From Bigelowiella natans CCMP2755 (lineage: Eukaryota; Protista; Cercozoa), in NCBI GenBank assembly GCA_000320545.1, contig ADNK01003027.1:1-64000 (forward strand): a stretch of 64,000 bases of DNA, in the 5' to 3' direction. A program made the position numbers and the translations under genes. The notes under the pieces were generated by a model. That model was not told the origin of the DNA. It saw only the letters and a program-made list of their open reading frames with translations, and made no database searches. Of this stretch, positions 4,600-61,200 are shown in pieces (within the stretch, counting starts at the first letter, position 1; the number at the start of each line of letters is the position of its first letter).

Positions 4600-5850
4600 T
4601 CGCAGCGAAAAGCACATTTGCTAACATTTATTGAGTGCTAATAATAATATACAGCGAGCAGCATCTGGACAACGCTACACTAGAATCGCCCAGTTGCCTG
4701 CATGCTGTGTTCAATGACATGATGCATGCACACATGAGACGGGCTAGCGGGTGGAATGAGGTGATTAAATCTTTTCAATTGCACTGTCATCCTCATGTGT
4801 CTGTGCAATGCTGCGGCTTCAGCGCTTTTGTCATGGCATAGCTACTCATTCATGTCACTGCATGTGTCTCTTTTGTGCATGCAAAAGCATTCATGTCGAT
4901 CACCACATCTAGACATGCATGCTGTGCACATGGCGTGCAGTACGCAATTTTGTTCGGTCATCGTCAAGCGTTTGTTTTTGTCTCGCAAACCCTGTCTAGC
5001 TGTCATGATCGCTTCCAATTGATTGGGCATTCTCAGTTGATGTTGTGCGTGTTCCGGGCAGCTAAGCAAGTCTAGCTAGCTAGAGGTGGGTCAACATCAT
5101 GCATCTTTGATCACTGCTCTAGTGCTGTCATGTGTGACAGTGAGCATCGTCTTCCTCATACCTGGAATCATTGGGCATCATGCACCGCACGCTAGCACGG
5201 TCGGCATGGCGCTATCCAGATTCACATGATGATGCACACAGCAATGTGATGCACATTTGTCATCACATCACGTTGTCCACAATCTCATGCACACATGCAT
5301 AGTTATCACATTGCTAGATTGCCACACATTGATCAAGGTGACAATTGAACAAATTTGATTTGTTCATTGCATCCGTCTCACATGCACATTCACATGCACT
5401 AGCACATCTAGTACACGTGTGTGTGTGTGTGTGTGTGCAACACCAGAAACACCACTGCTCTGCGCTGTGGCCATGCTAGCATGTCTGGATGTTGTTTGAA
5501 TGATCGACAACAAAAAAAAATGAGCACACAGTGATGACAATTCATCACGCACATCCTGACCCCATGCATGTTCATCATGTGCATGCATGCTCATCAGTTA
5601 ATGTCCAGATGTGCATGTTAGGTGCCTAGCTGGAAGGCATAAGCGGCGTGACTCGTGCCATGATTCTCCATTGCTGTTGCCACATGAGCATGCGTGCGAA
5701 CAATGCTACAAGGTCAATGCGTACACGTCAGCCTGTGACGGTCCTCTCAAGAACATGCTTGCGGATGTAGATGACAAAATATAACTAGAATAATGAATAA
5801 CAAATAATGACACATTGCATTACATGCATGTCTATGCTACAACACGCTAG
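4600..5850. mobile_element. Degenerate repeat island 1, TpA-depleted, containing copies of a dispersed ~70-90 bp repeat
   Basis: Dense CATG/TGCA/CTAG and few TA outside CTA/TAG. Repeat copies at 4733-4825(+) and ~5330-5382(-), with another just outside at 5918-5992(-), homologous to 17625-17703(+). Confidence 0.75.
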
Positions 5851-5861
5851 CTGTAATATAT

Positions 5862-5920
<59 letters not shown>

Positions 5921-6258
5921 GCCGCTGCATTGCACAGCTACATTAGGATGACCATTGAAACAATTTAAACATTTCATTACATCCGTCTCATATATTAATG
6001 TGATTAAGAATACATAGAAACTTATTTGTTATAATACGTGTGCACAATATCAGGAATCATTGCGTGTGGTGCTACAAAAAGCTGAAGTGGATAGCATATC
6101 GAATGGCGAGAGTGCTATTTGTTAACAACCTAGAGATCTAAAATTCATCATCCAACCTAAAGACCTAACATTCACCATCCCTGATGATAATTTGCTGTCG
6201 TTGAGACATCAATAATCTTTGTGCCGCAACCCTAATAAACAACTCGTTCCTTCTCTCC

Positions 6259-8135
6259 TCAATCTATTTGAAGAACTATGCCAGATTTTGCTGCAGGGGA
6301 ACGACAACTCTTCGTGTTTTTGATGGCAGCAGCAGCCGCAACGGTAGCAGCATCACCCCCCCCAGAGAAGTATGAGGTGCTTCTTTTAATGTTGGATCCT
6401 ACCTCAGGTTGATTGGCGCTCAGGTTTGGATGTATTCGTGCAAATTCATACCCCTGAGGTCGGTCAGTGGTAGGAATGAAAAGCATTTAAATGGTGTTGA
6501 TGTAAGCATATAATAATAACAACATATATTGATGACAAAGTACAACATGCTGGTATTTGTTTTATAAAATTGTTATCATGCATTAACATAGGTAACATCT
6601 CATCTACAACACTATTCACTATATATTGCATCGGTGGATTGATATGGCACAACACTACTACTACTACTACTACTACTACTAATACTTTAGAAATGAAGGA
6701 CAGTCGTATCTTGTTTTCTTCTTCCTCAGTAAAAGCAAAAGGGTCGTCAGCCTCATCTTTATTATTTTCCTCATTGTTCTTGTTTTTCTCTTGATCTTTT
6801 TCTCCTTCTGCATTGCTGCTCTTGTTCTTATTATTAACAATTCGTAAGCACACAACAGCTCCCCCAGATCCAGAGAACTTAGCCGCCATTCCGAAGTTCT
6901 TGGCCAAGGACACCAGCTCTATATTTCTACACCCCACACACCACAATTTACACAATAACAAATCGTCTTAACATTCGCACAGCACGGGTAGTATCTGAAA
7001 GAAGAAGAAGACATTTCATATTACACACACAAACACTGCCTCACCGTTCCCCTACGACGCCATCCCCATACATTTTCCTCCTTAGAGCAAAGTTTTTTTG
7101 CATTAGCCCTGCTAGATCTTCTGGGGTGTTATCTGCAACAAGGGCCTTCTTGGCCTCATCAGCAAATGATGCAACTTCTTTCATACCATCTACAATCAAC
7201 TTTTCTCCCTTTATCCATCGCTGCTTTGCGGTACTAGAAGAAGAAGAAAAAGAAGAAAAAAGGAGGAGGAAAAAGAAGAATCACATATCCATCAGACACT
7301 ACTCTGACTTACTCTATTATTGTCACTACCATCATGATCATCATCATCACCATCATCATCACCATTACCTGTGCACTTTGCCACTTTCTTCTGCAACAGT
7401 CGTGTTCCAAGCTAAGTACCTTAGAATTAGCATGATGATGGATCATGGGTAGTGAGAAGTGAGGAAAGTGCTTTTGTATGGATCTTCTTGGCTAACAGCT
7501 GCTCCTGATTCATAATGACGATAAGGGATAATATAGTGGTACTTTTCATATTATTATTATTATTACATTGTTGGAAGTAGCTTGGGGTCTATAGGTGTAT
7601 AATCTCCGTGACCCTGAGTCTTTATAAGCTTGGAATCGAAGTTCATGTGCACCAAACCACCGTAAACCTGACATTAGTTTAAGTATTATCTTCAAAAGTA
7701 TATTTGAATTTATGCTGCATCGTATTGATGGCGCTCTGCTCACTTTACCATCATTATATATCGGACAAATATGCAATAAAACAATGGGAAATAGCATCTG
7801 TTTAGATATTCTCACAAAGGCCCAATCTCAACATAGGTTGTAGCTATTTATCATCATCATCATCATTATTATTGGTTATGTTATCATATACAGTAGTAGC
7901 AGTAGATATTGATATACGGCACAACGAATGAACGAAGAAGAAGAGGCGAGATAGGTATTATTTCTAGAAGCAGCACCTGGATTACACGGTCTTGGAGACC
8001 TGCATTGATTCCCAACTCATTTACCTGATTAGATATGAAAAGTGTGTGTGCAGCAAAAAAGTCTAGCAGGCTAGCAGTACCAGTCTACATCAATCTCACT
8101 ATGTGCTATGTTATAATCATAATCACCACCATCAC

Positions 8136-8168
<33 letters not shown>

Positions 8169-8267
8169 ACGACTACTACACCTCTATATCAAGGATCTTC
8201 TGCGGTAGAGCTTCCTTCTTCAGTTTCAAGTCCAATAACGTCAATCCATAGAACCGCATTAGCCCTG

Positions 8268-8301
<34 letters not shown>

Positions 8302-8660
8302 CGGTTGTTGTTGTTGTTGTTGTTGGTGGTGGTGGTGCTGTTGTTGCGAGAACCATAATAAGACTACACTACTACTTCCTTAGATCATCATCACCATCAC
8401 GTTGAAAAAACTCTTCAATTGACTGATAGATCCATTATGGCGTGTGTCACATTGTCATCGATAGTAGGATTTAAGAAGAAGTGTGCTAATAATCTGAATG
8501 ATATACTACCTTTAAATGCTGCGGTGATGATAGCAGAGGACCCAGCCAGACCAACCATACGAGGAATGGTAGTTGAGTAAGACATTGTGAAATTGCCGCT
8601 CACCTCTACCTGCTCAGTGGAGATAATAGCATACACGCACACGCTGCTTTCAAATTGGGG

Positions 8661-8710
<50 letters not shown>

Positions 8711-8846
8711 TTCGTGCAGCAGTACACAAACGCTTATTACATCGGAGAAAATGATGATGATGATGATGATGATGACGACGATGATGATATTATTAAAGTC
8801 CTGTGCAAGTCTGTGATGAGTCATGGATTATCATCAAGTAGTAGTT

Positions 8847-8879
<33 letters not shown>

Positions 8880-9225
8880 CCCCAGCATCCTTGCACAACT
8901 GTTTGAACATTCTGCAGGTAGCCTAATTATGTACAGAAGAAGAAAGAAGAAGATGATGAAAAATCAAGACAGATACGGCCACAAGCACCCAAACACTGAT
9001 TTCACATCCTCATCACCACCACCTTCTCTTCCTCTTACTACTACTACTACTTCTACTACCAAAATACTACTACTATTAGTACTGGTAAGCACCTTGAGCA
9101 ACCTTAGACCCCCGTAGTAGCCATTCTGATCAGTGTGCCCTGCCAAGTGCTCGAGAGAGGAAAAGCTTGAAGGGTCAAATTCTGGATGTGCTACTAGAAC
9201 AAGCCGTCGGCTGTGATGATGAAGA

Positions 9226-9282
<57 letters not shown>

Positions 9283-9623
9283 GGAAGTGGGGAGGATTGA
9301 ATCATTTGCTGCTGGTGCTACTGCTACTGGTAGTGGTGGTGGTTGTATGTGGATTTACCACTACTTTCTTCTACTATTACTTGTTCTACTACTACTACCT
9401 TGGCCTCAACGTGACCTCTGCATGGAAGTTACGAATGGATAACGATAATGTTTTACCACCAAATCCATCGGATGGATTTCCCATCACCCCTTTCACAATA
9501 AAGAAGTAGTAGTAGTAGTAGTAGTAGTAGTGTCATAAAGCAACAAAATCAATGACGCAAAGGAAAGATGATAATAATTACATCTATTTACATAAAATAT
9601 ATATATGTAGTACTAAAAGGTGG

Positions 9624-9668
<45 letters not shown>

Positions 9669-9745
9669 TAGTACCGATCCTAGCACACACTCTTGAAACT
9701 ACTTTGGGTGGAAGCTTATTTAAGTGCTCATCAAGAACCTAAATA

Positions 9746-9794
<49 letters not shown>

Positions 9795-11420
9795 CAGCAG
9801 CAGCAAGTTAGGAGAATATGAAGCATTGCTTTCAACTCAGGACTATATATCAACCATTGCTTTTCACATCAACAACAACTCAGGACTATATATCAACCAT
9901 TGCTTGCAACATCAACAACAACTCAGGACTATATATCAACCATTGCTTTTCACATCAACAACAACTCAGGACTATATATCAACCATTGCTTGCAACATCA
10001 ACAACAACTCAGGACTATATATCAACCATTGCTTGCAACATCAACAACAACTCAGGACTATATATCAACCATTGCTTGCAACATCAACAATATAATAACC
10101 ATGCTAAAGTGAGTGAGTGTTTCCTTCCATTGTGCAAGATCAGCTATATCAAATCTTCCTATAAGGGGTGCCCCTCGAAGTTGAATCTTTTTCTCTTTCA
10201 CCAACCACCCCATCATCCCTCCTGTTTCAACCAAATCGTTGGAATTAATAATAATAATAACAATGATGATAATGATGATAATGATGATAATGCTGAGTGA
10301 GATGGAAGAAATGGGAGCGACAATGGAGGGGTGGGGCTTGTTGGTGCCGCCTCCTTCTATTATCGACTGCATTGATAGAAGATTGAATAGTAGCTGGTAC
10401 GGAGAGAAAACAACAGCAGCAATAATGATAGATAACAGTGATGATGAAGATAGTTGTTAATAGTGTTGATTACCAATGCTGTCAGCATGAGGATTAGTGC
10501 CAGGTGGTGCTTTGCTCTTGTGTTCCTTGTCGTCCTCTTCTCCATTGTAATCGCTACTTGCACCAATTTGTGATCCAAAACTACGAATGTGCTTCAAAAC
10601 CACCTGCTTTCACAGCCGTCATCGTCGTTATTATTATGATTATAGGAGCACCAACATTAACACCAACATCAGCAACGTGCAGAGCAATAATTCTTCCATA
10701 GCTCCATCATACTAACACATCTACTACTATTACTACTACTACTACTACCACTACTTCAGGAAGGACATGACAGACTGAAGAGCTTCATGGATCATGAGGT
10801 ACTCAATAAAACTATGCTACTATTCAACAACTCTTTCATCCTCCTCACCCTTGATCTAAGCGCATAGAATGCAGGGCAAGCAAAACGAGATGTCGTTTGG
10901 TTATGAAGTGGTTTCTCTAGAAGCTTTATGACTAATCCGCTTGATTCCTCAACCTGTAAATATGAGTGAAAGTAATTTAATTACGTGATATATTAAGTGG
11001 TCAGTGATGATGATGATGATGACGGATTTATAGATTGTTTACTACAGGGATAATAATACTAACTACTTGCGATGGTGTTGGTAGTGTATGATTACTGACT
11101 TTAATATTTTATGCATGCATGCTTGTGTGTGTGTGTGTGTGTGTGTGTGTGCCGTCTGTAGAAGAAGTACCACCACCACTTCCACTACCAAGCAGAAGCA
11201 GGGGAAGAGTATTGGTGATAGATTTGATCATTGCTAAGGCGTCATTATCATGTACAGCAGCCATCATCAGGTGGTATTGCTGTTTAGACGACGACTACGG
11301 TAAATAGGCAGAAACACCTCTACAATTCCACGCTTGGACACCTATAGTATTGGTAAGAGTAGTAGTTATTATTATTATTATTAGTAGGAAGTCTTATTCG
11401 TAACATCGTCATCTCATCAC

Positions 11421-11457
<37 letters not shown>

Positions 11458-16999: not shown

Positions 17000-18200
17000 C
17001 GCCATGGCATTGCTGACGTCCCGTGCCTATTGCTAGATTGGTACCCTGATAGCAAACTCATCTACCATTATCAGATGTCTTCTTCATCTACTGCACGATG
17101 AAACCGCAAGCATATTGGCTGCGCTAGTGCTCGACAATGATGCTGCTATGCGCTGTTGTCTAGCTGTGCACAGCTAGACTGCTGCCATGCATATCGTGTA
17201 TGTGCAGATAGCAGCTAGCGGCTCGTTATTGTACGTTGCCACATAGCATGCGCGCACACCCGCAGCCGTGTTATGACCATGCGTACCCCACATTTCATTC
17301 CTCTGCTGTTCGCGGGCAGCAAAAATTGCAAAAACTGTGCAACGCTGAAAATTTGCCTACTGACGCCCTACATATACCTGCTGCTACGTATACTGCTAAA
17401 CTAAATAATTGCTATGCTAGAATGACATGATGAAAATCATGGGCAGGCACATCACAGGGTGCATGTATGCGTGGAATGATGAAATTGAATTTGCAGCCAG
17501 AAAATTGTGCAAATTTGTTGCAACAAGGGCGCGCTTTACGGCACATCTATTTGTAGGCGCAGATGCATGCTGCATATACGTGCCGATTTGATCGACAATA
17601 ACATTGTGTATGAGACTACGGATGTATGAGACGGATGTGATGAAGAATTAAATTTTTTCAATGGTCATCCTGATGTAGCTGTGCAATGCAGCGGCTACAG
17701 CGCTAATGTTGCATCTGTTGGTTTCTGCCACAATATAACAATGTGTTTCATGCATTTGAAAGCGTCCTCATGCGACTACGGATGTATAGATGTGCCTGTA
17801 TATTCGACTTACTAAGTTGAGCTATATATAGACAAGATGCACATCTAGACATGCATGCTAGCATCTAGGCATGGCATGCCATGCTAGCCTAGCAATGCAT
17901 GGCAGCCAAGCTAGCTCACGTAGCGTACTATGTGTTGGTTCTTGCATTAAAAGTGAAATGGCTAACACCATATATGTACATGCGATTCACATGCAATATA
18001 GCAACATATACAATGCTGACGACACAAAAAAGATCTGCATCAGATTGCTAATCGTATCGATGGTCCACAATTGTACAGTCAGAGTGCGCATGATGGCGTA
18101 GAGAAGCGGCGACATGAAAGATGTTTATTTTACATTAGCAACGTATTGTGCAGAGTTTCATGATGAAGTCATGCACACAGCAGTTAACTATTACTTTTTT
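17000..18200. mobile_element. Degenerate repeat island 2, partially TpA-depleted
   Basis: GCATGC/GCTAGC-rich; contains the dispersed-repeat copy 17625-17703 and a related GACTACGGATGTA motif at ~17614-17626 and ~17775-17787. Confidence 0.65.
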
Positions 18201-18240: not shown

Positions 18241-18971
18241 TTAAGAAGCAGGTGGATAGGAACTCGAAGGTGGGTAGCCTCCTTGAGCTACTGCTGGTTG
18301 CGCCGCACCGTATGGAGAGTATGCTGGGTAACCTCCAGTTGCTGCTGCTTGTCCTCCTTGAGGTGGGGGGTAAGAAGCTGTTTGTGATGGATAACCTGGA
18401 TACTGAGGAGGAGCTGTTCCTGTAGTAGTAGCCGTAGTACCAGGGTATGGACTATAAGCTGGGGTGGTGACAGCTGCTGCTGCAGCAGCAGAAGGATACG
18501 ATGATGTAGGGGCTGGTTGCTGGCTGTATGGATGGTAAGAAGGTGCGGTGGTGTGAGGAGGAGGGTATGCTTGCTGTGGCTGCTGTGTAGGATATGACGA
18601 TGTCGGAGGAGGGGCATTGTATTGAGGTGGCGGTGCTCCATATCCTCCTCCTCCTCCTCCTCCTCCTCGTGGGTAGGATGATTGTCCGTATGAATTGTTA
18701 TATCCATAACCACCACCACCACCACCACCATAGCTTGAATAGGAGTTATTCCAAGACGATCTACCGCCATAGCCTCCTCCCCTTCCTCCTATCCCTCCCC
18801 CCCCAGTTTGAGATGCTGCCTGGCGAGTTCCCTTTGTATCACGTGCAAATTTGACACGAAGGGGTTTCGGAGCACCGGGAATCATATAGCCGTTCATCTT
18901 TTCAATGGCCCGCTCTGCAGGGGCTCTCTCGGCGTAGTGCACAAAACCGACGCCTCTTCCCAAACCCCTAA

Positions 18972-19018
<47 letters not shown>

Positions 19019-19480
19019 AGATGAAATTTTAAAATAAGGAGAGCAACAAATAATAGAACACAACCCCGTTACTAGTGTAAAGGTGATGTGATGATGCTGG
19101 ATTCTCCATTCATATGTTGAAACGATGATATATGATGTGATGATGCTGGATTCTCCCATTCATATGCTGAAACGATGATATATGATGTGATGACGCTGGA
19201 TTCTCCCATTCATATGTTGAAACGATGATATATGATGGAGAAATGCTGTTAGTGGCTAGATCAGGTTTATTATTACGTTTTGTTGTCAATCAGAATGCTG
19301 CATTCTGCGATGGTTCCAAAGGGTGCAAATAGAGTCTGAAGTTGCTCCTTCGTGTACTCATAAGGTAATTGTGCGACATAAACATTCTTTTGCATCAGCC
19401 TCTCCCCGCCGCCATATTGCGACGATTGTTGGTAATGACCACCTAAGAGTTGTTGGTGGTGGAGGTGGTGGGTTGGTGTC

Positions 19481-19514
<34 letters not shown>

Positions 19515-19614
19515 TTGTGGCCTTCCTTTTTAATAATAATAAGTAAGTACGTTGTACTCCAACATTACTCTCTTCTTCCTATTAAACCACCACCACCACA
19601 CCATCTTTCGAAGT

Positions 19615-19647
<33 letters not shown>

Positions 19648-20702
19648 CCATTCAATTAACTAACACACTGTAGTAGCCACGGTCACGGGCATAAACAACG
19701 CACATTTGCAAACACATAATACCATATCCTCCTCCGCCGCCACTGTACCCTCCCCCTCCAAGTAAGGGGCGACCGTTGTGTCTATCATTCGATCGCAAAT
19801 CTTCCTTTTTCTTAGCGTGCTCAACGCGCATAGGTATGCCGGTGCGTGAACCGGGAGCAGACTTGCCATTTAAAGCATTGATAGCTGCATTGGCGGATTC
19901 CGCAGCCTCTGTAAAGTAGAAGAAAAATACACAATATGCTAAGTAATCTACTCACTTAAACCGATTAGGGTGGTGTGGGTGGATGGGGAAAGATACCGAA
20001 ATGGACAAAACCAACGCCCCTGCTTTTGCCAAAATTTCTTAGAATCTGCACGCTAATGCCGTGCAAAAAATTGGGTTGGGACGGAAGAAATCGAACGAGC
20101 CGGAGAACATAGGAAACCGAAACACATAAAATTAAAAAATCAATGAAAATTAATATAAACCAGGTATTACGAATCGAAGTTGTGGTAAAATCATGGGTTC
20201 ATAAAGCGGATATAAGAGCATGCACATACCGAGTGATTTTCCCATATGGGTTAAAAAGTGCTTGCAAATTTTCTTCCTCGTATTCCTCAGGAATGTGGCA
20301 GACGTAGAGATTCAACATCCCCTCAGAAGTTGATGATGAGGGCGCGGAATTGCCATTGGGTTCAGGTTGCTGCTGTTGGACTTTCGATTCTACTACAGGT
20401 TTTGTCTCCTGATCTTCTAGTGACGGTGCTGGAGCGGGAGCGGGGGCTACATCAGCAGTTGCCTCTTCTTTGAGGTCTTGCACAATTATCTTTTCCTTCA
20501 CCTCAGTTTTTTGGCGTTTGGCCGGTTGAGCAGGCTCATTTTCAGTTGATGGGGGCACTGCAGAAGCTGAGCTATCATCGACACTACCAATATCCCGTTT
20601 TACACCGGCTGTTGTTTCCTCCTTTACGTCTCCTTTTTTCTCCTCCTCCTTTCCCAATGTGGCTTCCGTGTCAGCAGGCTTTTGCACATTTTCCTCAGTC
20701 AT
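18241..20702 (-). CDS. Two-RRM RNA-binding protein (ELAV/Sxl-like) with G/Y/P/Q-rich low-complexity tail
   Basis: RNP2 LNLYVCHIP, RNP1 SRGVGFVHF (~20000-20025), second RRM NVYVAQLP...LYLHPFGTI and RGVGFVHY...PLRVKFA; ATG at 20702, TAA at 18241-18243. Confidence 0.9.
19085..19235. repeat. ~50-bp intronic minisatellite, 3 copies
   Basis: GATGTGATGATGCTGGATTCTCCCATTCATATGTTGAAACGATGATATAT repeated in tandem. Confidence 0.9.
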
Positions 20703-21049
20703 TTTCTCTCTTTCTCTCAACCTGAAATCACGGACAATAATTTGTTGTATGCGTTCTTCTGAAGTAGGAAGATTAAGAGGAATAAGGAATCGAAGGAACA
20801 CACCAACAGACGATGTTCCTTCAAGAGATTACCTTCGGGTGGAACAGGGGGAAGCGCACTCAGGCAGGTTTCAGATTAAATTCACAATTGGCGAAGAAAT
20901 TTCAAATCTAATCCACCCCAGTTAGCATTTTTGTCACCTATCTGGAAATGTCGTATAATTTAATTTCCATGTATTTACATGATCCATGAAAATTCCGTGT
21001 CCGCACTTGGTATGGAATTCTGCGCACTAATCAAAAGTGGAAAACTGCG

Positions 21050-22390
21050 CTCAAGTTGTGGTCATGTCACATGTGCGACTTGAGGAACAACGCACAATTC
21101 CTAGATTCTAAATTCTTAGAACTGCATCTGAATTACGACTTAAAATCGAAGTCGCCCCCAATCATTGAATGCTTTTTTAAGAAACTGTTCTTAGTTTCTT
21201 CAATTTCTTCGAGAACGTCTTGATTCTGCTCAATTCCAGACTCCTCCAAAACCAAAATTCTGCTGGGGGCCCCCTCAGATGATCCAATCGTAGATCGTCA
21301 TGTGGACATGGCCTTCAGGAAGTTTTTGCTCAGAGTGGAGGTCTTGCGCCGTCAGAACTTTGCTGCTAATGTCATTGCTTCTCAATGACCAAGTCATGCC
21401 ATTTTGGCAAACCAGCTAGTTGATTTGCTGGTCACAGTCCTCACTGAAACCAGTTCGAGGCACTGCATTTTGCACGCTGCAAGTGTCTTGCAACACTTTG
21501 GAAATGTAGTTTTTCATCATTGTTTCATTGTTTCATTGTTTCCATGATCTGAATTGCTTCTGTTGCACGTTCACTGAGAGCCGTCCTGTCCGATCAACAT
21601 GGAGCTCCAGACGCCTGAAAGTCCAAAGTTTCTCAAGGGTGGGCAGTGGGTGGGGGGAGAGGGCACCTGCTGCCATTCTTGGCCCTGGCGAACAGGAATC
21701 ATGAAGCAATGTGACTGACTTTGACACGACGGCGACGCAACGTGTGAACTCCAATGATGAGCGAGTCTCCTGAAGGCTGTGTCGACACGATGGTCTGCGA
21801 TCGGGTCGTCCGAAGGAGCACCCAGGGGTGCTCTGGTTTTTACGGAGTCGGAACCATGGAAGAAACTTTGGTGGGCAAGTGAGGCAGGTGCCAGAGCCAC
21901 ACTCACATTCCAGCATTGGCGGAGAGGACCAGAGGAGTCCGTCATTCCTCGCATCGACCGAGTGGGATGATGAATCATGAACAAAGCATTGATGCAAAAA
22001 CCACACGAGCAAGAACCACATGGGAGACATGCACGAACGTGTTGTTCTGGTGTTGTTGGGAGGGTCATTGCACACACGGAGACAATTGCATGCACACACC
22101 AGAGATCTGGAGATGGGTGTGCCAGCTGTCACACACAATGTCTCTTTGTTGCAGACCATGGACACTGTGCAGGTGATGCACATGACACGTGTGAGTGTCA
22201 CATGTGCCACATCTATGTCCATCTACACGTCGTGCCTTTTGTCCACACATGTCGACCATGTGCACTGCGTGTGTCCATTGTGCAGCTGCTGCAGCATGTG
22301 ACTGGTGTTCACACACTTTCCCGTCTGCAGTCTAGACGATTTTGACAAAAATTGCTACTATGCTACATTGTTGTAGTTTCTCATGCATTC
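21050..22390. mobile_element. Island 3: two tail-to-tail relics of a probable non-LTR retrotransposon 3' end, TpA-erased
   Basis: 21239-21390(+) and ~21700-21850(-) encode homologous peptides (DSSKTKILLGAPSDDPIVDRHVDMAFRK / DSVKTRAPLGAPSDDPIADHRVDTAFRR) differing largely at third codon positions. The minus copy has a frameshifted CCHC-like segment upstream (~22030-22090) and a repeated tail at ~21515-21545. Confidence 0.6.
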
Positions 22391-27161: not shown

Positions 27162-29180
27162 CACAGTTGTTGCTACTTTTTGGTAGACGTCTACAACTAC
27201 TAGTATCATCCTTCACACCTACTACTACTACCACTAGTTTGTCATCATCAGCAGCAGCAACAGTAGTATTTATGCTAGTAGCACTACTACAAACAACTGA
27301 AGAATATTGTTGTTGGGAACCATGAAGAGGAGGAGGCGAAGGACGATGACTACAGCGAAGAGATGATTCAACTCCATCGTCCTGTGAATCATCATCATCA
27401 TCTTCTTCTTCATCATCATCATCATCATCACAAAGTAACAGAGTGCTGTTGATTTTGCTGGTAATGTTGTTGGTTTTGCTCCTTTTGGTAGTGCCTAGTA
27501 CTACAGCTCCTCTCCCTGTCTTATTTTCTTGTTTCTCAACTTTTTCGTCGTTATTATCATTGCCGTTATTTGAGCAGCTGCTCTCTGGCATTCCATAGTC
27601 TTCTTCTTCTTCTTCTTCTTCTTCTTCTTCTTCCCCATAGGATAATGTTGTTGATGGTGGTGGTGGAGAAGGAGGTGATGACAACGACGTTGGAGATGAA
27701 GATGGGGAAGAAGATGATGGGGAAGAGGAGGAATGTCTTTGCTGCTCCTTCTCTGGGTAATGATTCTTCTTTGCATCTCTATTTCTGTTCTTGTTATCTA
27801 GGGTTTTTTTCCAAGATGATGATCATCACCAACTTGCTGTACATCCTCGTGGTCATCCCATTCTCTCCTTCCGCCCCTCCTTTCCCCCCTCTTCCCCTCC
27901 ACCATCAACAACCGTTGATTTGACGTGACTGCGGACCTCGAATATAGACGTTTCAATCTTGTTTTACAGTGTGCGGTTGAACGAACACCTCGGGGAGCTG
28001 GTACTACCCCCAAAGCTTTCAGATGATCTTCATGCATCTTTGCTTCAAGATCATGATACTTTTCTTTCAACTCCTCTCTAGTCATTACTCGTGTTTTTTT
28101 CAGGGTTGTTTGAGGAATTAATGACTGGCAAAAGTAGTCAGGAAACAACGAATAAGAAGAAGAAGAATTCAAGTCGTAACACCTCATAAAACTACTTTTT
28201 CCTCTATCACGAAGTAGACGATGATGACGGTGGTTATCCTGAGTATCATCACATGATGATGTGTTTGATTTGAGGAGGGTGCTGTTAGCACCAGAACAAC
28301 CCATTAGTACCAAGTTGGGGTCAGCATCATCATCGTAGTGAATACTTTCATCATTCTTTCCTTTTTCATGATAGCTGTAATGGTGATAACAAACACTGCT
28401 GTGATCAACATCCTCGGAATAGAGAATGTTATTTCTTGAATTAAGTGTTGTGTTCGACGACAACGACGATGACGACGACAACGTCATATTGTGGGACACA
28501 GTCATCGATCCAGTTGATGAAGAAGAAGAAGACAAGTGACGTGAAGAGGAGAGCCTGTTGTTGATGTTGTTATGTATGGCAGCCATTCGCAGTCTCAGAT
28601 CATTCTTTTCATGACCTAAACAATAGCAGCAGCGCCAGCAACAACTGCATTCAAATACAATATTCCTGGTAAGATATATCTCAAGAGCAGTATTCTATTA
28701 TGAGCAAAACCTACTACTACTAGTACTACTACTACCATTCGACGCTTCGTGTTGTTGCCTTTTGCATACGACGATTCAATCAATTCTACTCGCATTCTTG
28801 GAAAATAGTGTCGCATTAGCTCTCTATACTTTATCCTCAGTCTGCGTGCAAGAGATGTAATCTTGGAGCTTAGACCATTGTATTCAGCACAATTAGACAC
28901 CAACAACTGAAAGTCGGCAGCGAATATTCGTACGTCCTTATGATACACGTTGCCTTGTTTAAGTCGTTTCTGTGGTATGTATGCAGGAATAATGGGAAGA
29001 ATGTATAGCCAATATTCATGATAGTAATAATCATTTTAAGAACCAAAAGAACAAAGATGACAACGGATGAAGATTCACATCCGTTGTTTATGTGTGTGTG
29101 TGTGTGTGTGTAAAACAACAACTACTTCATAAAACTGCTCTGCTGCACTGTGTTTAATGTTCTGCTGAATCTACCACCCC

Positions 29181-32274: not shown

Positions 32275-33437
32275 ATGGAACTATCACGAATAAACCCGTT
32301 GTTTATTATCATTGTTATTATCGTTGCGATAGCACATGCAGCAGCGTTGTCATCCTCCTCACAAGTAGTAGCATCACCCACTTTAAAAAGAGAATTAAGA
32401 TCTGGCGATGACAAGAAGACTACTTTCCATTTGATGGAATTAATAAGGGGTTCTGGCGAGGAGTGCAACAAGAAGAAGAGGAAGAAGAAGAGGAAGAAGA
32501 AGAAGACTTCCCATAGCGATTTACCTCCTTATCGGAACATCTTGCATATCGTGATTGACGACCTAGGTTGGCATGATGGGTCATGGAAATTATCGTTGAC
32601 ACCAAATCTGAATCGCCTAGCTCAGGATGGCGTTTCTCTGGAGCGTTTGTATGCCTCTCCCATGTGTGCCCCTTCAAGAGCATCAATGTTCACAGGAAGG
32701 CATCCCGCAGCACTTGGATACTATAGAAACCCAAGTGAAGACGCATGCTTACCATCTGATTGTGAATATTTGCCATTTCATCTTCGTAGCCTCAAAAACC
32801 CTGGCATTGTCCAGAAACATGATGATAATGATGATGATGATGTGGAAGAGGAAGAGGATCGAAAGAGCAGCTACAAAACCCACCTTGTTGGTAAATGGCA
32901 CCTCCCTTGGCATTCACCTGACGAACTACCCTCAGGACCAAAAGTTTGCTTTGATAGGTAGTAGCAGTTGTAGCAGCAGCAACAGCAGCAACAGCAGCCA
33001 CAATGACATGACTTTAGAGTGACAATGCCATTAGGTAGAAGCCTCCCCTTTTTCCATGCATGTATTTCTGTTGTCGGGTTGAGACCATTCTCCTTCCTTC
33101 CTTCCTTCCTTCCTTCCTTCCTTTCCTCCTTCTCATGCATCTAAATCAATATTGAAACATTATTGACCACATAAGATAGTTCTCCAATCGTTCTTTATAA
33201 CATGTATAATAACTGTATGTTCTTACTACTTGGTTCTGCTTCTTGTCTGGTGCTTTATTGGTTAGTTTCTTTGGATACTTGCACTGGGGAATGGATTATT
33301 TCACGCATGAGTTCCCTCCTTCTGTTCATACAGGACCTGTAACTTGTAGGGGGTACGACGTTATTTGATGTTGTGGTGGTGATTGAGTGTTAGTTGTTGC
33401 AAGTGCATTATTTCTTACTATCACTTATTCCTCCTGC

Positions 33438-33469
<32 letters not shown>

Positions 33470-34856
33470 CTTCTTCTGCTTTTAGCAGCCATTTCTTCAT
33501 CTCTGATACACATAAATACGAACATACACGCACGCACACATAACAAATGTCTAAAAAAACAATTACAATGAAATAAATAACAAACGGTGTTGCAAATTAC
33601 CTACATGTGTACTAGTTTATCATCATCATCATCATCATCATCACCTAAGAATTTATTATTATTTTCCCCTCCTCCTATCCTCTGATAATGTATGTTCAGC
33701 TACGATTTAATAAACTCTACTCGGTTTCGTCAAAGTAAGAAGGGAGATGGAGGAGGAGGAGGAGGAGGAGGAGGAGGAGGAGGAAGAAATGTTCATGAGG
33801 TTGATTCTCCGGGCGACTTATTTGATGGGATTTACGCTGATGAACTATTCGCACAAGAGGCTCTGCGTATTATCAAGACGCACAGTAGTAGCGAGAAAGA
33901 ACTGATCAAAATGAAGAAACAGCGGCAGCCGTTATACTTGTGTGTAGCATTTCAGGGTCTGCATGATCCGTATCAGGTTGTTGTAGTAGGTCATGGAAGA
34001 AGTAGCAGCAGCAGCAGCAGCAGCAGCACATGTTCGTAGTTCATTAGGAGGATCCTGATTTCATTTCATTTCATTATATTACAGTAATAATAGATGTATC
34101 AACAAACGACCTCAACAAATTGTTTCTTAGCTTTGGCACTTCACCATAGTTGACACTCTTTGACAAGATTGCGTGGTTTTGCTGCTACTATTAATGTATT
34201 ATGGTGTTTGGTTGTGGTGAGAAGGCTCCTGATAAACATTCTGGGATGCAGCACTCACGAAGTGAAGCTTTGCCTGATTTCTCCTCCACAGATGATCTGT
34301 GTAGTGGTATTACTACAAGCAGTAGCAGCGGCTTGAAGGATGGTAGTAAGGATGAGTTTGGGGGATATGATGATGATGGAGATATGATTCACAAGAAGGA
34401 GGAGCTAGAAGCTCTAACTACCAAATGCTCAAATTACTCGAAAATGGTAGTAAGTCAGGGCGCATTATGTAATATATGATAAAACGAAGAAGAAGAATAA
34501 ATTAAGGCGAAAGAATAAGACAAACAGTTCTGCGTGAATATCATACAATCATTCTTCAGGCTATTTTCCAAAAGAGACACTCCAGATGATTGCTATCATC
34601 ATCATCATCATCATCATCATCATATCTATCATGGTTATTGTCTTGCCTGTTAGACTGACAGTTCCTTCTTGCTATTCTTTTTCTTCTTTTTATTATTGTT
34701 CTTCTTCTTCTTCTTCTTCTTCTTCTTCTTCTTCTTTTCCAGCTTACAAAATTGGATGATTTGATTGGGCAGCTTGTGAATGAGATCAAGCATCAAGGGA
34801 TGTACGAGAACACAATTATCATCGTACATTCTGACAACGGCGGAGCACTTGCATGG

Positions 34857-34906
<50 letters not shown>

Positions 34907-36138
34907 AGCTGCAGTAGTAGTATACGTTCGCCACATCCTTCCTATTACTTTCTCCATATTCTCATAGTAGACAAAATTCCTACTATTATTATTTGTTGTT
35001 GTTGCTGTTCATCATAGATTATTACTCCTAGCCATTACTTCAGTTGTTGGCTTTGCGATATCCTGCTGCTGCTGCATCCATATTGTTTGTTGTTTTATTT
35101 TTATGCAGGGCCGAGGATAGCAAGCTAGGTGGAGCATCTAGTAATTACCCATTAAGAGGCGGAAAGTTTGGATTATATGAGGGAGGTGTAAGAGTGAGGG
35201 GCTTCGTCCACTCCGATCTATTACCCGAATCACAAAGAAATTCAACATGGGATGGCTTAATGCATATCTCAGATATTTTAGATACCATCGTTGGAGCAGC
35301 AACAGCAGGAGGTGTTACTATTACAGAGGGAAGAAGAAGAAGAAGAGAAAAGGAGGAGGAGGAGGAGGAGGAGGAGGAGGATACGGATGTTGTTGGAGAG
35401 GACCAATTGGAAGAGGAGGTAGCAGCCTTAACAGCAACAGATACATCAGTCGCTATGGAAGAAATGAGAAAAGGAGGAGGAGGAGGAGGAGGAGGAGGAG
35501 CGACAAGCAAAGACGGCACTACCGTTACACCTAGTAGCAGCAGCAGCAGCAACACGTTCAACATGTGGCCATATATCTTGTCAGGACTGAAATCGCCCCG
35601 TAATGAAATAGTTCTGCAGCCTCTCAATCAGTATTGGCCAAACGCCAATAATAATCGCTGCTGCTGCTGTTCTGATTCATGGCTTAACAATCCATATCAA
35701 CCCCATTGTGGTGCAGCTTACCTGCAATGGCCATACAAACTAATTGTGGGAGAACCTGGTGACCATAGAACTTCAAAGTCAGGATTAGCTGATCGATTAC
35801 TTGAATGGCAGCAGCCAGCATGTCATCAAAACGACGCTCCTATGATCATAAACATAGGGCCAAAGTTCGGAAGTCAAGAAATCCGACTTTTTGACGTCGA
35901 CAGAGATCCTGGAGAAAGTATTAATTTGGCTCACACCCCAAAAGGGAAAAGGCTCGCTATGCAGTTGGTTCAAAGATTAATCACAGAAAGTGCAAGTTTC
36001 CCTGCACCAACTGTAGGAAGTGACTTGTCGGCACCACCCAAAGAAGCATGTGAGGTGGTGAGAGAAACAGGGAACTGGCGACCTTGGGAACCTTCCAAAT
36101 TTGGAGATCATGTAGTTGTTGCGACAAGGAATGAATGA
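32275..36138 (+). CDS. Secreted/lysosomal arylsulfatase (formylglycine-dependent, ARSB/I/J-like)
   Basis: Hydrophobic N-terminal signal; NILHIVIDDLGWHD; CAPSRASMFTG (CxPxR); THLVGKWHL; PLYLCVAFQGLHDP; ENTIIIVHSDNGG; SNYPLRGGKFGLYEGGVRV; LFDVDRDPGE. Confidence 0.93.
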
Positions 36139-36449: not shown

Positions 36450-36480
36450 GTAATATGATTCTTGCACCTTGATCGCCTAG

Positions 36481-36518
<38 letters not shown>

Positions 36519-37900
36519 TTGCATTGCTATGATTGGCAAGTGGGGATTCATCTGATGGCAATTTTGTGCTCGTTTGCACATCATGTGAGTTTGACATGGC
36601 CCACCAAGCTAGCGAGAAAGGGGCCATGAATGCTAGAATGTGCAAGTGTTCATTCGATTGTTAGGCTGATCGCCACTGCATTTGTTTGCACGGGAACATC
36701 TAGACACATGGTCATGCCAGCATGCAGCATGCCCACTAGCTAGCTAGTCCACAGTAGTAGCTAGCGGTCCTGTGAGAAGAATTTGCACATGCAGATCTTT
36801 CTGCGATTGCTGATGAAACAAAACAGGTGTTGCCGAGGAAGCTGAAGCTTCCAGGTAGGCAGTGGAACAAATGCTCTTGTTGCGCATGCAGGCGCGCTGG
36901 AAATTGATGCATGTGAAAGATGCGATTTGACAATGATGCCAGCAGCAAACAATTCAAATTTCACACATGGAGCCATTCGCTGACGCCATGCTAGCATGCA
37001 TGGATGCCAGCATCAAGATTCTTCATTTTTGCTTTGCGGGCAACCTTTTGCATTGAAAGTTTTGGGGTTCCGTTGGGGTTTCATTTGTTTTGCATGCATT
37101 TTTGCACACAACTGTGTCAATCCCGGTGACGAGTGGGTTTTGAACAAACCATGCTTTGCGCGTGCGGCCTGGCGCGCTCAATCGTTGCAATCGGACATTG
37201 GAAGCACACTGGAGCCTGTTTGAGGTTCAAATTTGATTTTTTTTTCGAATTTCAGCTCAAAAACCTCATTTTTCAACGCAGAACGCCTGCCAGCAGGCGA
37301 AAATTGGAAAATTCTTGCCACTTTCGAACACGCTAGCGCATTTGCATTTGCGTGCCATGAGTTTTGCAAGCTCATGAGGGTGTGTGCACACTAGCTTTGT
37401 GGACGTGCGAAGTTTCAGCACACGCACGCAAAAATCACTGGACCAATTGACAAATTCATGCTGTTCGTTGCACATTTGACACAGTGATTGAAAATTCACA
37501 CCATTCATCACACATTTGATGCAGTTGTGCATGTCACACACTAGCACACCTAGACACTCTAGCTACTTAGCAGTAGTGCTAGACTGTAACGTGCATGACA
37601 CAGCATCGCGAATGTCTCCAGATGTTGTGTCCATTTTGCAGCGTTGACGTGCCGAAGCAAATGTGTCTACGTTAGTACTGCGCTGTACTTGCGCACACAC
37701 GCACACACGCACACACATGATTTCACTTTTGTTGCGTAGTGTCTTGCGAAGATGCGCGATTCGCGCCAATATTCATGTATGCGCGATGGAGTGATGTCCC
37801 AATCCATGCTATGTGTCATGTGTACTAGCAGAGACTATCTAGCTATGTCTAGAGATCTGTGCATTGACATGCTATGCATGGCTTGGAGTCCCTTTGATAC
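36450..37900. mobile_element. Degenerate repeat island 4, TpA-erased
   Basis: From ~36480 to 37585 every TA I could find is in CTA or TAG; 36994-37333 contains none. No recognisable coding remnant. Confidence 0.7.
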
Positions 37901-37940: not shown

Positions 37941-39174
37941 CTACAGAAGCGAAGATGCACAGTGAGAAAACAAACTAAGTAGATGAAATGGCGAATCGCT
38001 TGATTTGCGACAGAGACTTTCTTCAAGGTAGTAGGGGTTTGTCGTCTCGATGTTGTTTCTATGTGAGCTATGATCTCTTTCATGATGATAAAATGATGAA
38101 TTATGTGCTTCAAATAAATCTACAATCGATTCATTTTTGAGAGTTGACAAGCGCCAGAGCTTGCAAGCTGAAGCAGCCACGTCGTTGTTTCCAAGCTTTC
38201 GAAACAAATATATTGGTCTTGCCTGTCCAAACGATTTGCTACTAGTCCCAGATATATTAAAAGTGCGGAACAGCTGCAAACGGGTGTGATTTCGAATCCA
38301 AGCGAGGAAATCTTTGGGACGCAGCTTTATGTTCTTGAGAGATCCAATCGTAGGAGAGGAAGTTTCTCTTTTAGTTTGCGCTTTTTGGTAGCTTTTCCAT
38401 GGTTGTGGTTCTAATGCAAGAACCCCCCCTACCGAAAGAGATCGTTCACATTTGAGGAGCAAGTCGATGATTCCCTGGTCGCCCCTACATTGGGGTATTA
38501 TTATAATAATCATTTTTATTATCATCATCATTATCTCTTTTATAAATCTTATCACAACTTATCAGGTAACAACTTGTAAATTATTATCATACCCACACCA
38601 TCATCGTTAATGCTACTTGTCGTACGTTATACGTACGATGTATTACCAATTCAGGTGGATCCACTTCGTAACGCTAAAGCAAGTGATCATGTCATAAACT
38701 CCAACCGATTCATAAGGATTATCCAACCAATTTTGGCAATGGAAATGTACTTGAAGTCGTCGCAAATTTTGAGCTTCTGCATGATGATGATGATGGTGAC
38801 GTTGAGTGCTACTTCCTTTTCCCCCTCTTGGTAGAAAATGCTCTTTTCTCAAGATGTTGTTGCTGCTGCTGCTGATTATTGGTGGTTGATATTGATTCTG
38901 ATGCCTGTGGCGAGGATGAAGATACGATGAGCGAAATAATAATGCACCAGAAGCTCTCGAAGAATCATCTTTAGCTGCCACTGCCGCTCGTATTGCATTC
39001 GAGCGTGCTTTGTAAATTAAGGTAGGGTCAATATCCACACCATGCATTACGTAGGGCTGAGCTTTTAGAGCAAGGCCTAGTGTCAGGATACCCTCCTGAC
39101 AACAACAACAACAATAATATTAATTATACCATTAGATAATAAGGGCAGCGTACGTGCGTGTGTGTCCCCGGTAG

Positions 39175-56505: not shown

Positions 56506-56548
<43 letters not shown>

Positions 56549-57243
56549 ATTCGGAACTTTATTTCTTCCGTCACTCCTGGAGGCAATTTCAATTTAAATA
56601 CACTATTTCTGTGATTACAGAGGAGCGTTACCATTATCTTCATTTGCTCCAAGATCTGCTGCGAATAAAATAGATTGGAAGGGAAAGTCTACAGAATGGA
56701 AATTCCTGGGTACAATATAATAAAAAATGGGACATATGATAAATAATGGGATTTCTCAGTATACTCCCTCATAATAATTTTACATTGTACCCTCGTCCAT
56801 ACATCATGCAGCTACACCATGGATAAAGCATTCCATCGATTCATATTTCTCAGACAAAAGAGAAAGGGCTGTTGTTGTTTATGCAGCAAGGAGAGCAAGG
56901 GGGTACATATCTATTTTTTTATTTACATCATGACAGTGTGCTGCTGTTACTGATGATGATAATAAAAATGATAACTTTGTGAGTAATATATTGATGAGAT
57001 ATGGTACTGTGTATTGTGGCGTTGTTCTCATTTTATGCTGCCTTGCTTCTGTATTTTGTGTTGATAAATAATATCATGATAGATGGCTTGGAATAGCGTC
57101 AGCCTATGAAGAGACGGAACAATATCAGCAAGGTACTCGTGTATGTGTAAAAGTATACCTGCATATACTGATATTCATTAAGAAAAATTTACATATACAA
57201 ATATATAAAAGTATATGTGTGTAAAAAATACATAATTGAATGT

Positions 57244-57287
<44 letters not shown>

Positions 57288-57405
57288 ATATGTGTCTCCA
57301 TATGTGTGCATCTATTTTATAAATATTCTATTCATGTGCATGTACACATGGATGTGGTTGTGTGTGTATGTATGTTTATGTATGTGTATGTATATATTAC
57401 CTGAA

Positions 57406-57464
<59 letters not shown>

Positions 57465-57482
57465 TTATGTGTGTGTGTGTGC

Positions 57483-57525
<43 letters not shown>

Positions 57526-58237
57526 CATTCGAAATATGCCTTTTCTAGGGTGTTCATGATGTGATGATACGTGACAATCAAAGAAACAGTTGTGCCAACA
57601 GAGTAAACTTCTTGGATGTATATTTGAAATCAGGATTTGAGAGCTTTTCTGCAGCCTTTGGAAATCTGAAGATTAATCTAGAGTCAGTAAAAGCTCGGCC
57701 ATCAACTTTATCAATATGATTTGATATCTGTATTAGATGCATTGAAATTTGAGTTATTTTTCTACTAAGAAGTTAAAATTCTTCTTCTGTTCTTAACCTA
57801 AATTATGTCTCTCCACTGGTTAGCTTGGCTGCAGTTCCAAAACAAAATGCGTACATGGATTATGCGGCATGGCATCTAAAGTATGATGAACACCGAATTT
57901 TTTTTGCTTTACATATTTAATAGTAATTTCTAGGATTTATATTAAATTTTCCAGCGTATGTGGATATAGTATTTTTTGGGGCACTATCTTGATGCTAACT
58001 CGTTAGTTAATGCTTGATTCTATTCAAACAAGTGTAAAAAATTTTTATATCATACATTTTTACAAGTCAGCAATAACCATAACCTTAATTTGATTAATAG
58101 TTGATTTACACGATAGGACCTAGAATCTAACTTAGAATTAATTTTATTGCTGTCAGATGTATAGTTGGATTATGTAAATCGGCGGCACGTACGAAAGGAA
58201 TACATCTTTCTATTAAGTTCGTTTATGTGTGTGTGTG

Positions 58238-58282
<45 letters not shown>

Positions 58283-59466
58283 ATGTCGATCATATAATAT
58301 ACGCGTCAACAATATCTCTGGGAGGGCATTGGAATTTAGTATCTGTTAGATAGAGTATATAACAATATTCAAAAAGTTATCAGCATCGATTGTGATGATT
58401 AACAATGACACGATATACCAGATATCTTGAAAAGGCTGTTAAACTGATTGCTCCACTTGCAAGGTGCTCTTGTTGAGCATTTACTCACTATATTCGTGAT
58501 TTCAAAAGAAAAGAGACTCCGAATATCGAAACATTACAAAAATTACAATAATAATATTTCTGTAATGTATCTTTTGGAAACATCAAATTCCATTGCAACG
58601 ATACTAATAATAAAATCGTTTCTTTTATATTTGTCGTCATCGAGGTAGCTCTTTGTCGTCACTACGAATCAACATAATTATCTTTGCAATTTTGGGTTGG
58701 TGTTTTCTTTTCCTGTTCTGATGCACAGGGCTAACCCAATAGCTACGAATAAATTTTCGCTTCTCCCTTCGTCCAGAATACTCACCAATCAAAATCGAAG
58801 AAAGGAGAGGTAGAAGATAATACAGTAAACAATAATGGTAGGATTTGACACAAAGGGCGATGATATCTGAAATCTTTCTGATTAAAGACAGGAAAGATCT
58901 CTCTCACTTTGGATCGGCTTAGCAAGACTAAAGACATTATCGATCGAGCTTCACACTAAGGTTTGATTTTATTGAAGATTAAAAGAAATTTAATGATGAT
59001 GAGATCATGATGGCATAGATGGGAGCATTTCAAAACGCGATTGATGACCGGGAGGAGGTACGTAACATGAAGTAATAGTGATGCTTATATGTATTTATGG
59101 AATGTGTTATATGATAACGGTGCAAGATTAAGAAATATATTTATGATGAGCAATGAGTTATGAGGTAAAAACGGAGCTTCTCATCCATAATTATATCTCA
59201 TCGCAAAGTGATATAATTTTTAGTATGATCACAGATGCACATTATTATCAGTTCTCATTGAAATTAGAATAGTCAAATATCTTCCGCTATGCTATGCACA
59301 CGTGTGTTTTCTTTTTTTATATTTGGTGCTCACGAATGTATCTAGGTGGGGAAAATATGCAGATTAATAGGAAATTCTGTCTCCACGAGGTTTCATAGCC
59401 ACCAAGTGCAAAATTATACAGAAAATTATATTTTACTGACTTTTCTACTTTATTCTGTCCTCCCTT

Positions 59467-59561
<95 letters not shown>

Positions 59562-60262
59562 AATAATAAAGAGAGATATATATATATATGTGTGTGTGTG
59601 TATGTGTGTGTGTTTTTCTTTTTTTTTTCAGTATTCTCTGTGAGGCAGAGCTTTCTATCGGCGATACATATCTTCGGCTAGGCATGTGGTAATTTACTAA
59701 CGAGCTGACTCTATCTGTACACAATCACAATTATTTTAACATGTCATCCTCTTTCGAAAACAAACACCAAATATTCCATTTTCTAGGGAAGACGCTCGTT
59801 TAGCTTTCAGCGTTGTCTACAACAACAGGTGTCTTCTTCTTTGCCCTCTTTGTTACAATTTTTGTTTCATAAGACGAGGGAAAATCGATAAAAGCTTTGA
59901 AAAGATTATCGGAGTGACTTCATTTTTTAATTCTCCCCACATTTCAAAAGTCGGTTTTGTTACAAGCAAGAAAGAATGTCATATTACGACTACTTCCATT
60001 ACTAATTTTCCGTGCAGCTTTCGAGCGGCAATCGGAGATCGACCTTTAAGTATCACCAACCGATGGAGAGCAAGAGCACTCTCTGGAAGAGCAGACGCGA
60101 ACATGAAAAGTGGTGCCTTCTACGAACAAAATCGAGATGTACAGGTATGATCCACCATAAATGTGTTAAATACGAAGCTCGTCGAATCCTGTTCTTTGCT
60201 CATAGGAGCTAAAAGTATTGCTGACTCAGTCGGATGAGCCATTGTTGCGTCAGGTTTTTTAA
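41578..60262 (+). CDS. NLR-like STAND NTPase: helical N-terminal region - NB-ARC (AfsR/AP-ATPase-like) - winged helix - TPR-like repeats; more than 35 exons
   Basis: Walker A VLLVVGARGVGKS (47932-47970); Walker B VIVLDDV and sensor-1 VLIITTR (exon 49109-49349); LASHTGG (~50335-50353); winged helix CFGYVFARLPRIARGVFR|GLFVFGGPFSASMVCELL (52915-53151); LGALNGETVNIAH (~54870-54910); TPR-like ARRARG|WLGIASAYEETEQYQQ (56880-57131) and RARALSGRADANMK (60065-60110). Not all junctions were resolved, so the 5' end and the single-gene model are less sure than the NB-ARC call. Confidence 0.72.
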
Positions 60263-60399
60263 TGATAAATGAATATATTCTTTGACGAACTCATTCTTAC
60301 GATTACGGAACCTTGTAACACACATGTAGGAAATACTTCATTCTCGAGGGAAAAGCGTAAACGCCGCAGTTGAGAAAATGAGATGATAATGCTTGCACA

Positions 60400-61200
60400 T
60401 CCTTGTAATCACGGGAACACATTTTAACGTGATACAAAAGCATGTGTCATGCATGCTTGGAGCCTGTCAAAGCGGTGGAAACAGATTCTCAGTATTTTTG
60501 ATCCGCATGTTCCTTAATTTTACGCAGAGGCAAATCAGATAGCTCATCTATCATGAACGTGCCGAAATGTACGCTGCTGGTTTCGGAATAACTTTATTAC
60601 ATTAAAATTTGCATCTTTACGCATCATGAGACAATTATATTTGCAATGTTAATTTGAACCAGTGGTCGATTGCAACAATATGTGTACTACTCGATTAACA
60701 ACGCTACCTGCGAGCATTCACATGGATGCAGCATCTTTTGCAGCGCATGCAATGCTGCACATGTAATGGCTAGCTTGCAGACCTAGCGTACACGCGCACA
60801 TTTGTGGCGACATGCTCCTGATTAATAAGACGTGCATGCGTGGACATACACACACTCAAAGTCACATATACAACATGTTTTTGTGTGTACGTGTTTTGAC
60901 AAACTACACACTTGCATTCTTGCATAATGACATCGCATGCACATTGCAATGCGACTATTTTTACGCATGTATTTACTAATAATAACGAATCAGAAGCTAC
61001 ATTATGCCGCAAGCATGTGAGCAGAAAGTCGTACACAACAAGATCATGTAACTTCAATATCTCCTAACTACTTGTTCATGTGCCTTGTCTGAATTACCAA
61101 TAGGGATAATGCGACTTTATATTTTGGGTTCGATGAGCACACAGCTAGACAGTGTTGCCAGTTTTTATTTACAAGTAATTTGCTTCCATTCAAACAAGAG
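60400..61200. mobile_element. Island 5, partially TpA-converted degenerate repeat region
   Basis: CATG/TGCA/GCATGC enrichment peaking at 60710-61090, but many unconverted TAs remain. Confidence 0.45.

Follow-up and report, generated by a model that had tools for sequence, protein, structure and literature searches.

Why have several intergenic stretches of the Bigelowiella natans CCMP2755 genome lost much of their TA, and why are they rich in TG and CA? This question is raised by a 64,000-nt window (contig ADNK01003027.1, positions 1 to 64,000), in which a first-pass annotation had listed five TA-poor islands and had proposed an undescribed, repeat-targeted conversion of TpA to TpG or CpA (A:T>G:C), the mirror image of repeat-induced point mutation (RIP). 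Polarised comparison of transposon copies showed an A:T>G:C change of TA to TG or CA that acts on both strands and comes near saturation. The process itself is already known, since TpA>TpG/CpA hypermutation has been reported in mutation-accumulation lines of B. natans (Mettrop et al., bioRxiv 10.64898/2026.01.13.699255), so the spectrum was published for this organism and the system is not an undescribed one. On balance we favour the reading that the islands are transposon relics processed by this hypermutation, with the locus marked and the adenine deaminated.

Composition was measured in all five listed intervals. The observed/expected ratio (o/e) of TA was 0.52 (4.6-5.85 kb), 0.95 (17.0-18.2 kb), 0.21 (21.05-22.4 kb), 0.41 (36.45-37.9 kb) and 0.79 (60.4-61.2 kb), with 0.88 for the whole window. 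The claimed TG/CA enrichment was seen in all five intervals (TG and CA o/e 1.5-2.0), together with a CG o/e of 0.60-0.95 and low CC/GG. TA-void blocks were called by a three-state hidden Markov model (HMM), which returned only three. Three of the five islands were therefore accepted, one interval was kept as partial and one was dropped:

4678-5705, no strand: TA-void island 1 (HMM), 27 TA with 14 in CTAG, TG 1.93 and CA 2.22 o/e
17000-18200, no strand: partial island, TG/CA and CTAG excess, overall TA not lost
21201-22354, no strand: TA-void island 3 (HMM), 8 TA in 1154 bp
36456-37556, no strand: TA-void island 4 (HMM), 18 TA with 13 in CTAG
60400-61200, no strand: fifth listed interval, TG/CA-rich, not TA-poor, single copy, not accepted in the feature

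The TA remaining in the intervals was mostly CTAG (o/e 2.24, compared with 0.36-0.75 for other NTAN). The longest run without a non-CTAG TA was 708 bp (36856 to 37564), a length whose chance probability is about 1e-11 even if TA is given a coding-like rate. The 17.0-18.2 kb interval showed no overall depletion of TA (o/e of non-CTAG TA 0.77-0.80, near the 30th-36th percentile), but CTAG made up 12/89 of its TA (13.5%) against 2.2% in the background (p = 6e-7), with 6/7 TA in CTAG in the patch 17830-17925; it is partly confirmed, as a partial or relaxing island. At 60.4-61.2 kb TA was near the window norm, the CTAG excess was not significant (3/57, p = 0.13) and a genome search found no second copy. 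Another TA-poor block, at 62500-63700 of the window (o/e 0.17-0.5), carries pyrimidine-rich tandem repeats; it showed no TG/CA or CTAG excess, which points to a different cause of its TA poverty.

The direction of mutation was read from copies of the same families across the genome (91,405,885 bases in 3736 contigs searched). The reference for family A of the long interspersed nuclear elements (LINE-A) was one real copy, L062. Fourteen LINE-A copies differed from L062 by 0-9 bases over up to 3.4 kb and kept at least 97% of about 145 TA, so young, near-identical copies are not TA-free. Copy L077 showed 56 differences from L062, of which 53 were TA>TG/CA (53/56, p = 3e-53), and L081 showed 60/67. 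The TA of L075 and L083 was 96-97% gone, and the heavily hit copies other than L077 had lost 88-97%. Among the differences of the young copies, 16/49 were also TA>TG/CA. Changes at CpG were few (1/56 in L077, and 9-10 among some 245 changes in the saturated copies), and the substitution rates were 1-3% for C>T at CpG versus 50-69% for A>G at TpA. Resolved by context, the polarised spectra were dominated by TA>TG/CA and not by CG>TG/CA, and the earlier statement that neither RIP nor 5-methylcytosine (5mC) decay is the cause was upheld.

We further used an ocean-metagenome relative of LINE-A (L089, 68% identity) as an outgroup. Out of 53 TA common to L089 and the young copies, 48-50 were TG/CA in L075 and L083, and 0 in L060. 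Where L089 has Tyr, the aligned residue of L075 is Cys at 16 positions, His at 15 and Tyr at 1. The outgroup confirms TA and Tyr as the ancestral states of LINE-A, and the loss of Tyr to Cys or His should disable the hit copies. The intact LINE-A frame (L062:1-3399) has 145 TA and no CTAG. A young LINE-A copy is already His or Cys at 5/40 outgroup Tyr positions, and the metagenome relatives (L087-L089), at 58% and 77% identity in the reverse transcriptase (RT), have a normal Tyr content.

Both products were formed in similar numbers, with TG:CA outcomes of 68:61, 69:69 and 30:23 in three copies. The choice of TG or CA agreed between mutated copies at about 43-65% of sites, which is about chance and indicates that each copy was hit separately after insertion. 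No strand clustering was found (247 runs observed versus 246 expected, runs test p = 0.55), and the share of same-direction neighbours was 0.49-0.53 at all distances, although repeated rounds could blur strand clusters. RT copies without Tyr were found in a second family (LINE-B), where TG/CA swaps made up 44-49% of the differences in two close pairs. These swaps imply that LINE-B coding DNA was TA-normal at insertion, and for the same reason a TA-free master of that coding DNA was rejected.

These spectra also bear on an inherited TA-poor composition, CpG decay or RIP-type C>T change as the origin of the islands. The non-coding ends of active elements are indeed already TA-poor, with mostly the slowly converted contexts described below. 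However, the polarised TA>TG/CA excess, the small CpG counts and the TA-normal coding parts of some LINE-B copies at insertion leave this explanation next to no probability, and it is refuted as the main cause.

Mettrop et al. found the TpA>TpG/CpA rate raised thousandfold on inserts from an NCLDV (nucleocytoplasmic large DNA virus) and a virophage, their main target being single-copy, and proposed an ADAT2-like enzyme as a candidate. Their case for action on transposons was inferred from composition only, with an excess of RT, endonuclease and DDE domains among coding sequences poor in TpA and with 124 TpA-poor clusters. The two data sets agree in A:T>G:C change almost only at TpA, in both TpG and CpA products and in transposon domains; they differ in the copy-level polarised spectra, gradient and boundary data, which are given here. 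The main text of the preprint does not mention CTAG, wider context or spreading. Relative to that main text, copy-level targeting, the gradient, the context hierarchy, a weak second target and the lack of strand clustering are useful additions. Our literature search turned up no other system with a TA>TG/CA signature; on the sparing of CTAG and on DNMT5 of B. natans it found nothing. At one offset, an NCLDV capsid locus, the only one in the genome, fits 3/3 listed mutation sites of the preprint together with their contexts, a weak match by itself (probability of about 0.2 by chance). More than 100 equal-scoring RT matches belong to one family, many of them in a 1659-aa open frame (e.g. C1779:57788-58213), and this very young family fits the 150-copy, 5.7-kb element of the preprint. 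Resequencing runs of 16 samples, one run dated 2021 and many DNA runs dated 2025, likewise fit the T0 culture and 15 lines.

Which copies are hit was examined in LINE-A. Fifteen copies at 99.7-100% identity had lost hardly any TA, against 36-88% conversion in others about as old. L077 had 3 non-TA changes, as few as the untouched copies, yet it had lost 36% of its TA. The loss rose along the element (0/64, 6/20, 16/24, 16/18 and 14/14) and was confined to the 3' half. The 3' flanks of the saturated copies L075, L081 and L083 kept 10-11 non-CTAG TA per 100 bp, and the untouched copies L066 and L067 adjoined TA-free flanks. Beyond LINE-B copies and copies of a miniature inverted-repeat transposable element (MITE), the TA-free zone reached from zero to more than 1.5 kb past the repeat. 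General spreading into host flanks was not supported as a rule, though many family loci lie in wider TA-free zones.

The uneven hits on copies of similar age, together with the single-copy viral target of the preprint, favour the marking of individual loci over RIP-like homology pairing. A true mirror of RIP would recognise repeats by DNA-DNA homology pairing; it would account for the repeats in the accepted islands, for mutation that can stop at an element edge and for the 16/49 TA>TG/CA changes in young copies. It is, however, hard to square with 15 near-identical copies that keep at least 97% of TA, with the partial loss in L077, with the single-copy main target of the preprint and with single-copy DNA inside island 3 that is TA-free, and we consider it very unlikely. 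Duplication does not appear as the trigger, since near-identical copies were spared and single-copy DNA was converted. The first-pass description as repeat-targeted and RIP-like thus held for the outcome and failed for the targeting, while its association with transposons was borne out, as the accepted islands carry LINE 3' ends or a MITE. Resequencing of two samples showed no differences in the single-copy DNA of the islands, and none were expected at the published rate over so short a stretch.

The earlier claim of repeat or transposon relics in at least three islands was exceeded, with relics found in four:

4697-5053, minus strand: decayed LINE-A 3' end, about 62% identity to young copies
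5313-5400, plus strand: second short LINE-A 3' relic, 74-80% identity
5865-5995, plus strand: intact (TA)n microsatellite, then a LINE-A 3' relic (5918-5995) with its TAs kept
17625-17776, minus strand: young LINE-A 3' end, 2 substitutions relative to L062, three slow-context TAs intact
21235-21543, plus strand: LINE-B 3' end with microsatellite tail, copies 95-99% identical, found downstream of RT in L082 and L079
21700-22040, no strand: older repeat relics in island 3, 76-79% to other loci
37107-37529, no strand: MITE with terminal inverted repeats of about 14 bp, 89 candidates, 84-92% identity

The stretch 5865-5995 is the unmutated edge of island 1. The LINE-B 3' end gave 738 first-look candidates in the genome. 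Island 3 also holds an inverted relic (21768-21853) and a multi-copy motif (about 21970-22040), and the rest of it around the older relics is single-copy DNA that is TA-free. In the terminal repeat of the MITE, an ancestral TA became TG in some copies and CA in others. Pfam identified endonuclease and RT domains in LINE-A, which marks it as a LINE and ruled out a DIRS element; a Pfam search of the island open reading frames gave no match. The LINE-B tail (window 21515-21543) is a tandem 8-bp unit common to all copies and resembles a T/A-rich unit with both TAs converted. The resemblance suggests that the non-coding end of the active LINE-B lineage descends from a mutated ancestor. Taken together, the three accepted islands are transposon graveyards of LINE 3' ends, a MITE and older relics. 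Host genes lie near them at 537-941, 18241-20801, 28616-28948, 32275-36138 and 37941-39047, with matches around the islands to dienelactone hydrolase, an RRM protein, a bromodomain, a sulfatase and pieces of a Bin3 methyltransferase.

We determined the context dependence of conversion from surviving TA. For the two repeat families found in the window, the share of ancestral TA still in place was 69/109 at CTAG, 34/60 at GTAG and 15/119 in other contexts. Internal survivors in saturated LINE-A copies were CTAA 8/74, CTAC 5/23, ATAG 1/44 and all others 3/330, so that CTA/TAG contexts survived more often (14/141 versus 3/330, p = 8e-6). Across 261 TA-void 200-bp windows, CTAG stood at 1.5 of expected, CTAC at 0.07 and the rest at 0.03 or less, where the low non-CTAG values are partly set by selection of the windows and the CTAG value is not. 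Since CTAG is removed more slowly than any other context, it builds up beyond expectation. Absolute immunity of CTAG was rejected, as conversion was seen in repeat copies and, both ways at about 5% each, in pooled reads; the CTAG and CTAC/GTAG contexts are still converted, about four times more slowly. A simple rule of resistance for all CTA and TAG held only in part, with ATAG/CTAT converted both ways and the rare survival given above.

Outside TpA, A>G was raised at AAT (4.1%), CAT (2.3%) and AAC (2.2%) versus less than 1% elsewhere, and AAA was not a target. These three contexts form a weak second target. Four non-TpA T>C sites in Table S2 of Mettrop et al., which its main text does not discuss, lie in CAT and AAT and match them. 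The same table holds 231 de novo mutations; by hand count, the mutated A had a 3' G at 20/206 sites, where a 3.5-kb sample of the region offers such a neighbour in 22% of cases. On scaffold 10 of that table, A>G in TAG was counted at 3/91 and T>C in CTA at 17/115 (p = 0.008, hand count), an asymmetry between the strands.

How the marked-locus reading might work can be set out in steps. A locus would first be marked as foreign or silent by chromatin or an RNA guide, and a mutator would then work within the marked domain, site by site and over many rounds; the domain could take in a part of an element or end where the element ends. Within it, adenine at TpA on either strand would be turned into inosine by a TadA/ADAT2-type enzyme, which is the least certain step, and inosine would be read as G at replication and fixed. 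The adenine deaminase is put forward as a hypothetical agent. It is possible, and we suggest it tentatively, that a chromatin- or RNA-guided adenine mutator picks single transposon copies and not repeats in general, spreads about 1.5 kb from a starting point and has a context code, and that active elements have adapted to it, with only slow contexts kept in their non-coding ends.

Several points weigh against this reading. The family copies were the best-scoring matches and not a random sample, and the MITE and LINE-B copies in the alignments are not phylogenetically independent. The expanded deaminase-fold family that had been anticipated was not seen: the genome gave six matches of the TadA/CDA fold (PF00383), besides one ADAT1/ADAR-type locus (PF02137). 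Two runs of chromatin immunoprecipitation sequencing (ChIP-seq), with antibody and input unspecified, showed no enrichment on single-copy island DNA and are uninformative. Finally, TpA is palindromic, and sequence cannot separate adenine deamination from a T-centred change.

This last symmetry serves a different route, in which the same spectrum comes from error-prone DNA synthesis (a Y-family polymerase placing G opposite template T) or from a thymine modification that codes as C. The secondary A>G at AAT and AAC resembles a WA preference. Pol eta and Pol iota insert G opposite template T at WA motifs. However, transversions and other changes are very few in young hit copies (3/56 in L077), strand-coordinated tracts are absent, and the secondary targets include CAT but not AAA. 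For the thymine variant, a genome search for Tet/JBP gave no match, in a search without a responding control. We judge the polymerase or thymine route unlikely, if worth keeping in mind.

A two-step route, in which the TpA adenine of silent DNA first acquires a modification (e.g. methylation) and is later deaminated or miscoded, would explain the slowing at CTAG/CTAC as a preference of the modifier or a protective mark. It gains from the strict dinucleotide specificity, the palindromic slow context and a second target that includes ApT, the usual eukaryotic context of N6-methyladenine (6mA) (PMC12695648). However, 6mA is a mark of active genes in other protists and does not lower their ApT content (PMC12695648), a genome search for N6/N4 methyltransferases (PF01555) gave no match, and CTAG is converted both ways in about 10% of pooled reads and so is not fully protected. 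We consider this route improbable.

Two further observations concern chromatin and DNA methylation. In the same two ChIP-seq runs, from 2026, the signal at the RRM gene's 5' end (window 20266-20826) was raised 2-3-fold. A full-length, apparently intronless match to a C5 DNA methyltransferase (C1391:110667-111599, E 2e-76, 649-aa frame) lies about 2 kb from a repeat motif common to island 3, and is possibly element-borne or foreign.

Compared with known systems, the process resembles RIP in that transposon copies become saturated, on both strands, with dense, context-specific transitions and are left with a dinucleotide scar. Fungal RIP makes C>T changes that create TpA, has homology as its trigger and is tied to the sexual cycle. 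The A:T>G:C process of B. natans in contrast takes TpA away, leaves most near-identical copies alone and reaches single-copy DNA in clonal lines; C>T creating TpA was not what the islands showed. They differ from 5mC decay in the rates given above, and CpG>TpG/CpA did not dominate. With AID/APOBEC and ADAR, too, the host hypermutates foreign nucleic acid and the 5' neighbour of the target matters. However, APOBEC makes C>T changes in strand-coordinated clusters, whereas both DNA strands are hit equally here and such clusters were not found, and ADAR edits RNA on one strand. A 5' T/U preference fits the invariant U33 before A34 in tRNA. Amphioxus ADAT2/ADAT3, which has A-to-I activity on DNA (PMC10354150), and TadA-derived base editors share the A>G chemistry; ADAT2/ADAT3 is not known as a transposon defence, and the B. 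natans homologues are not tied to the islands.

The islands yield long, Tyr-free, Cys/His-rich false genes in annotation. If the guided adenine mutator is real, the context code (TA; slow CTAG and CTAC/GTAG; weak AAT/CAT/AAC) would fingerprint a natural double-stranded DNA A-to-G editor, and any candidate enzyme must reproduce this fingerprint in vitro; such an adenine editor would interest base-editing work. For a protist, a genome defence of the A:T>G:C kind is out of the ordinary, and it entered the literature only months ago; the copy-level data extend the observation on viral inserts to a shown defence against transposons in B. natans.

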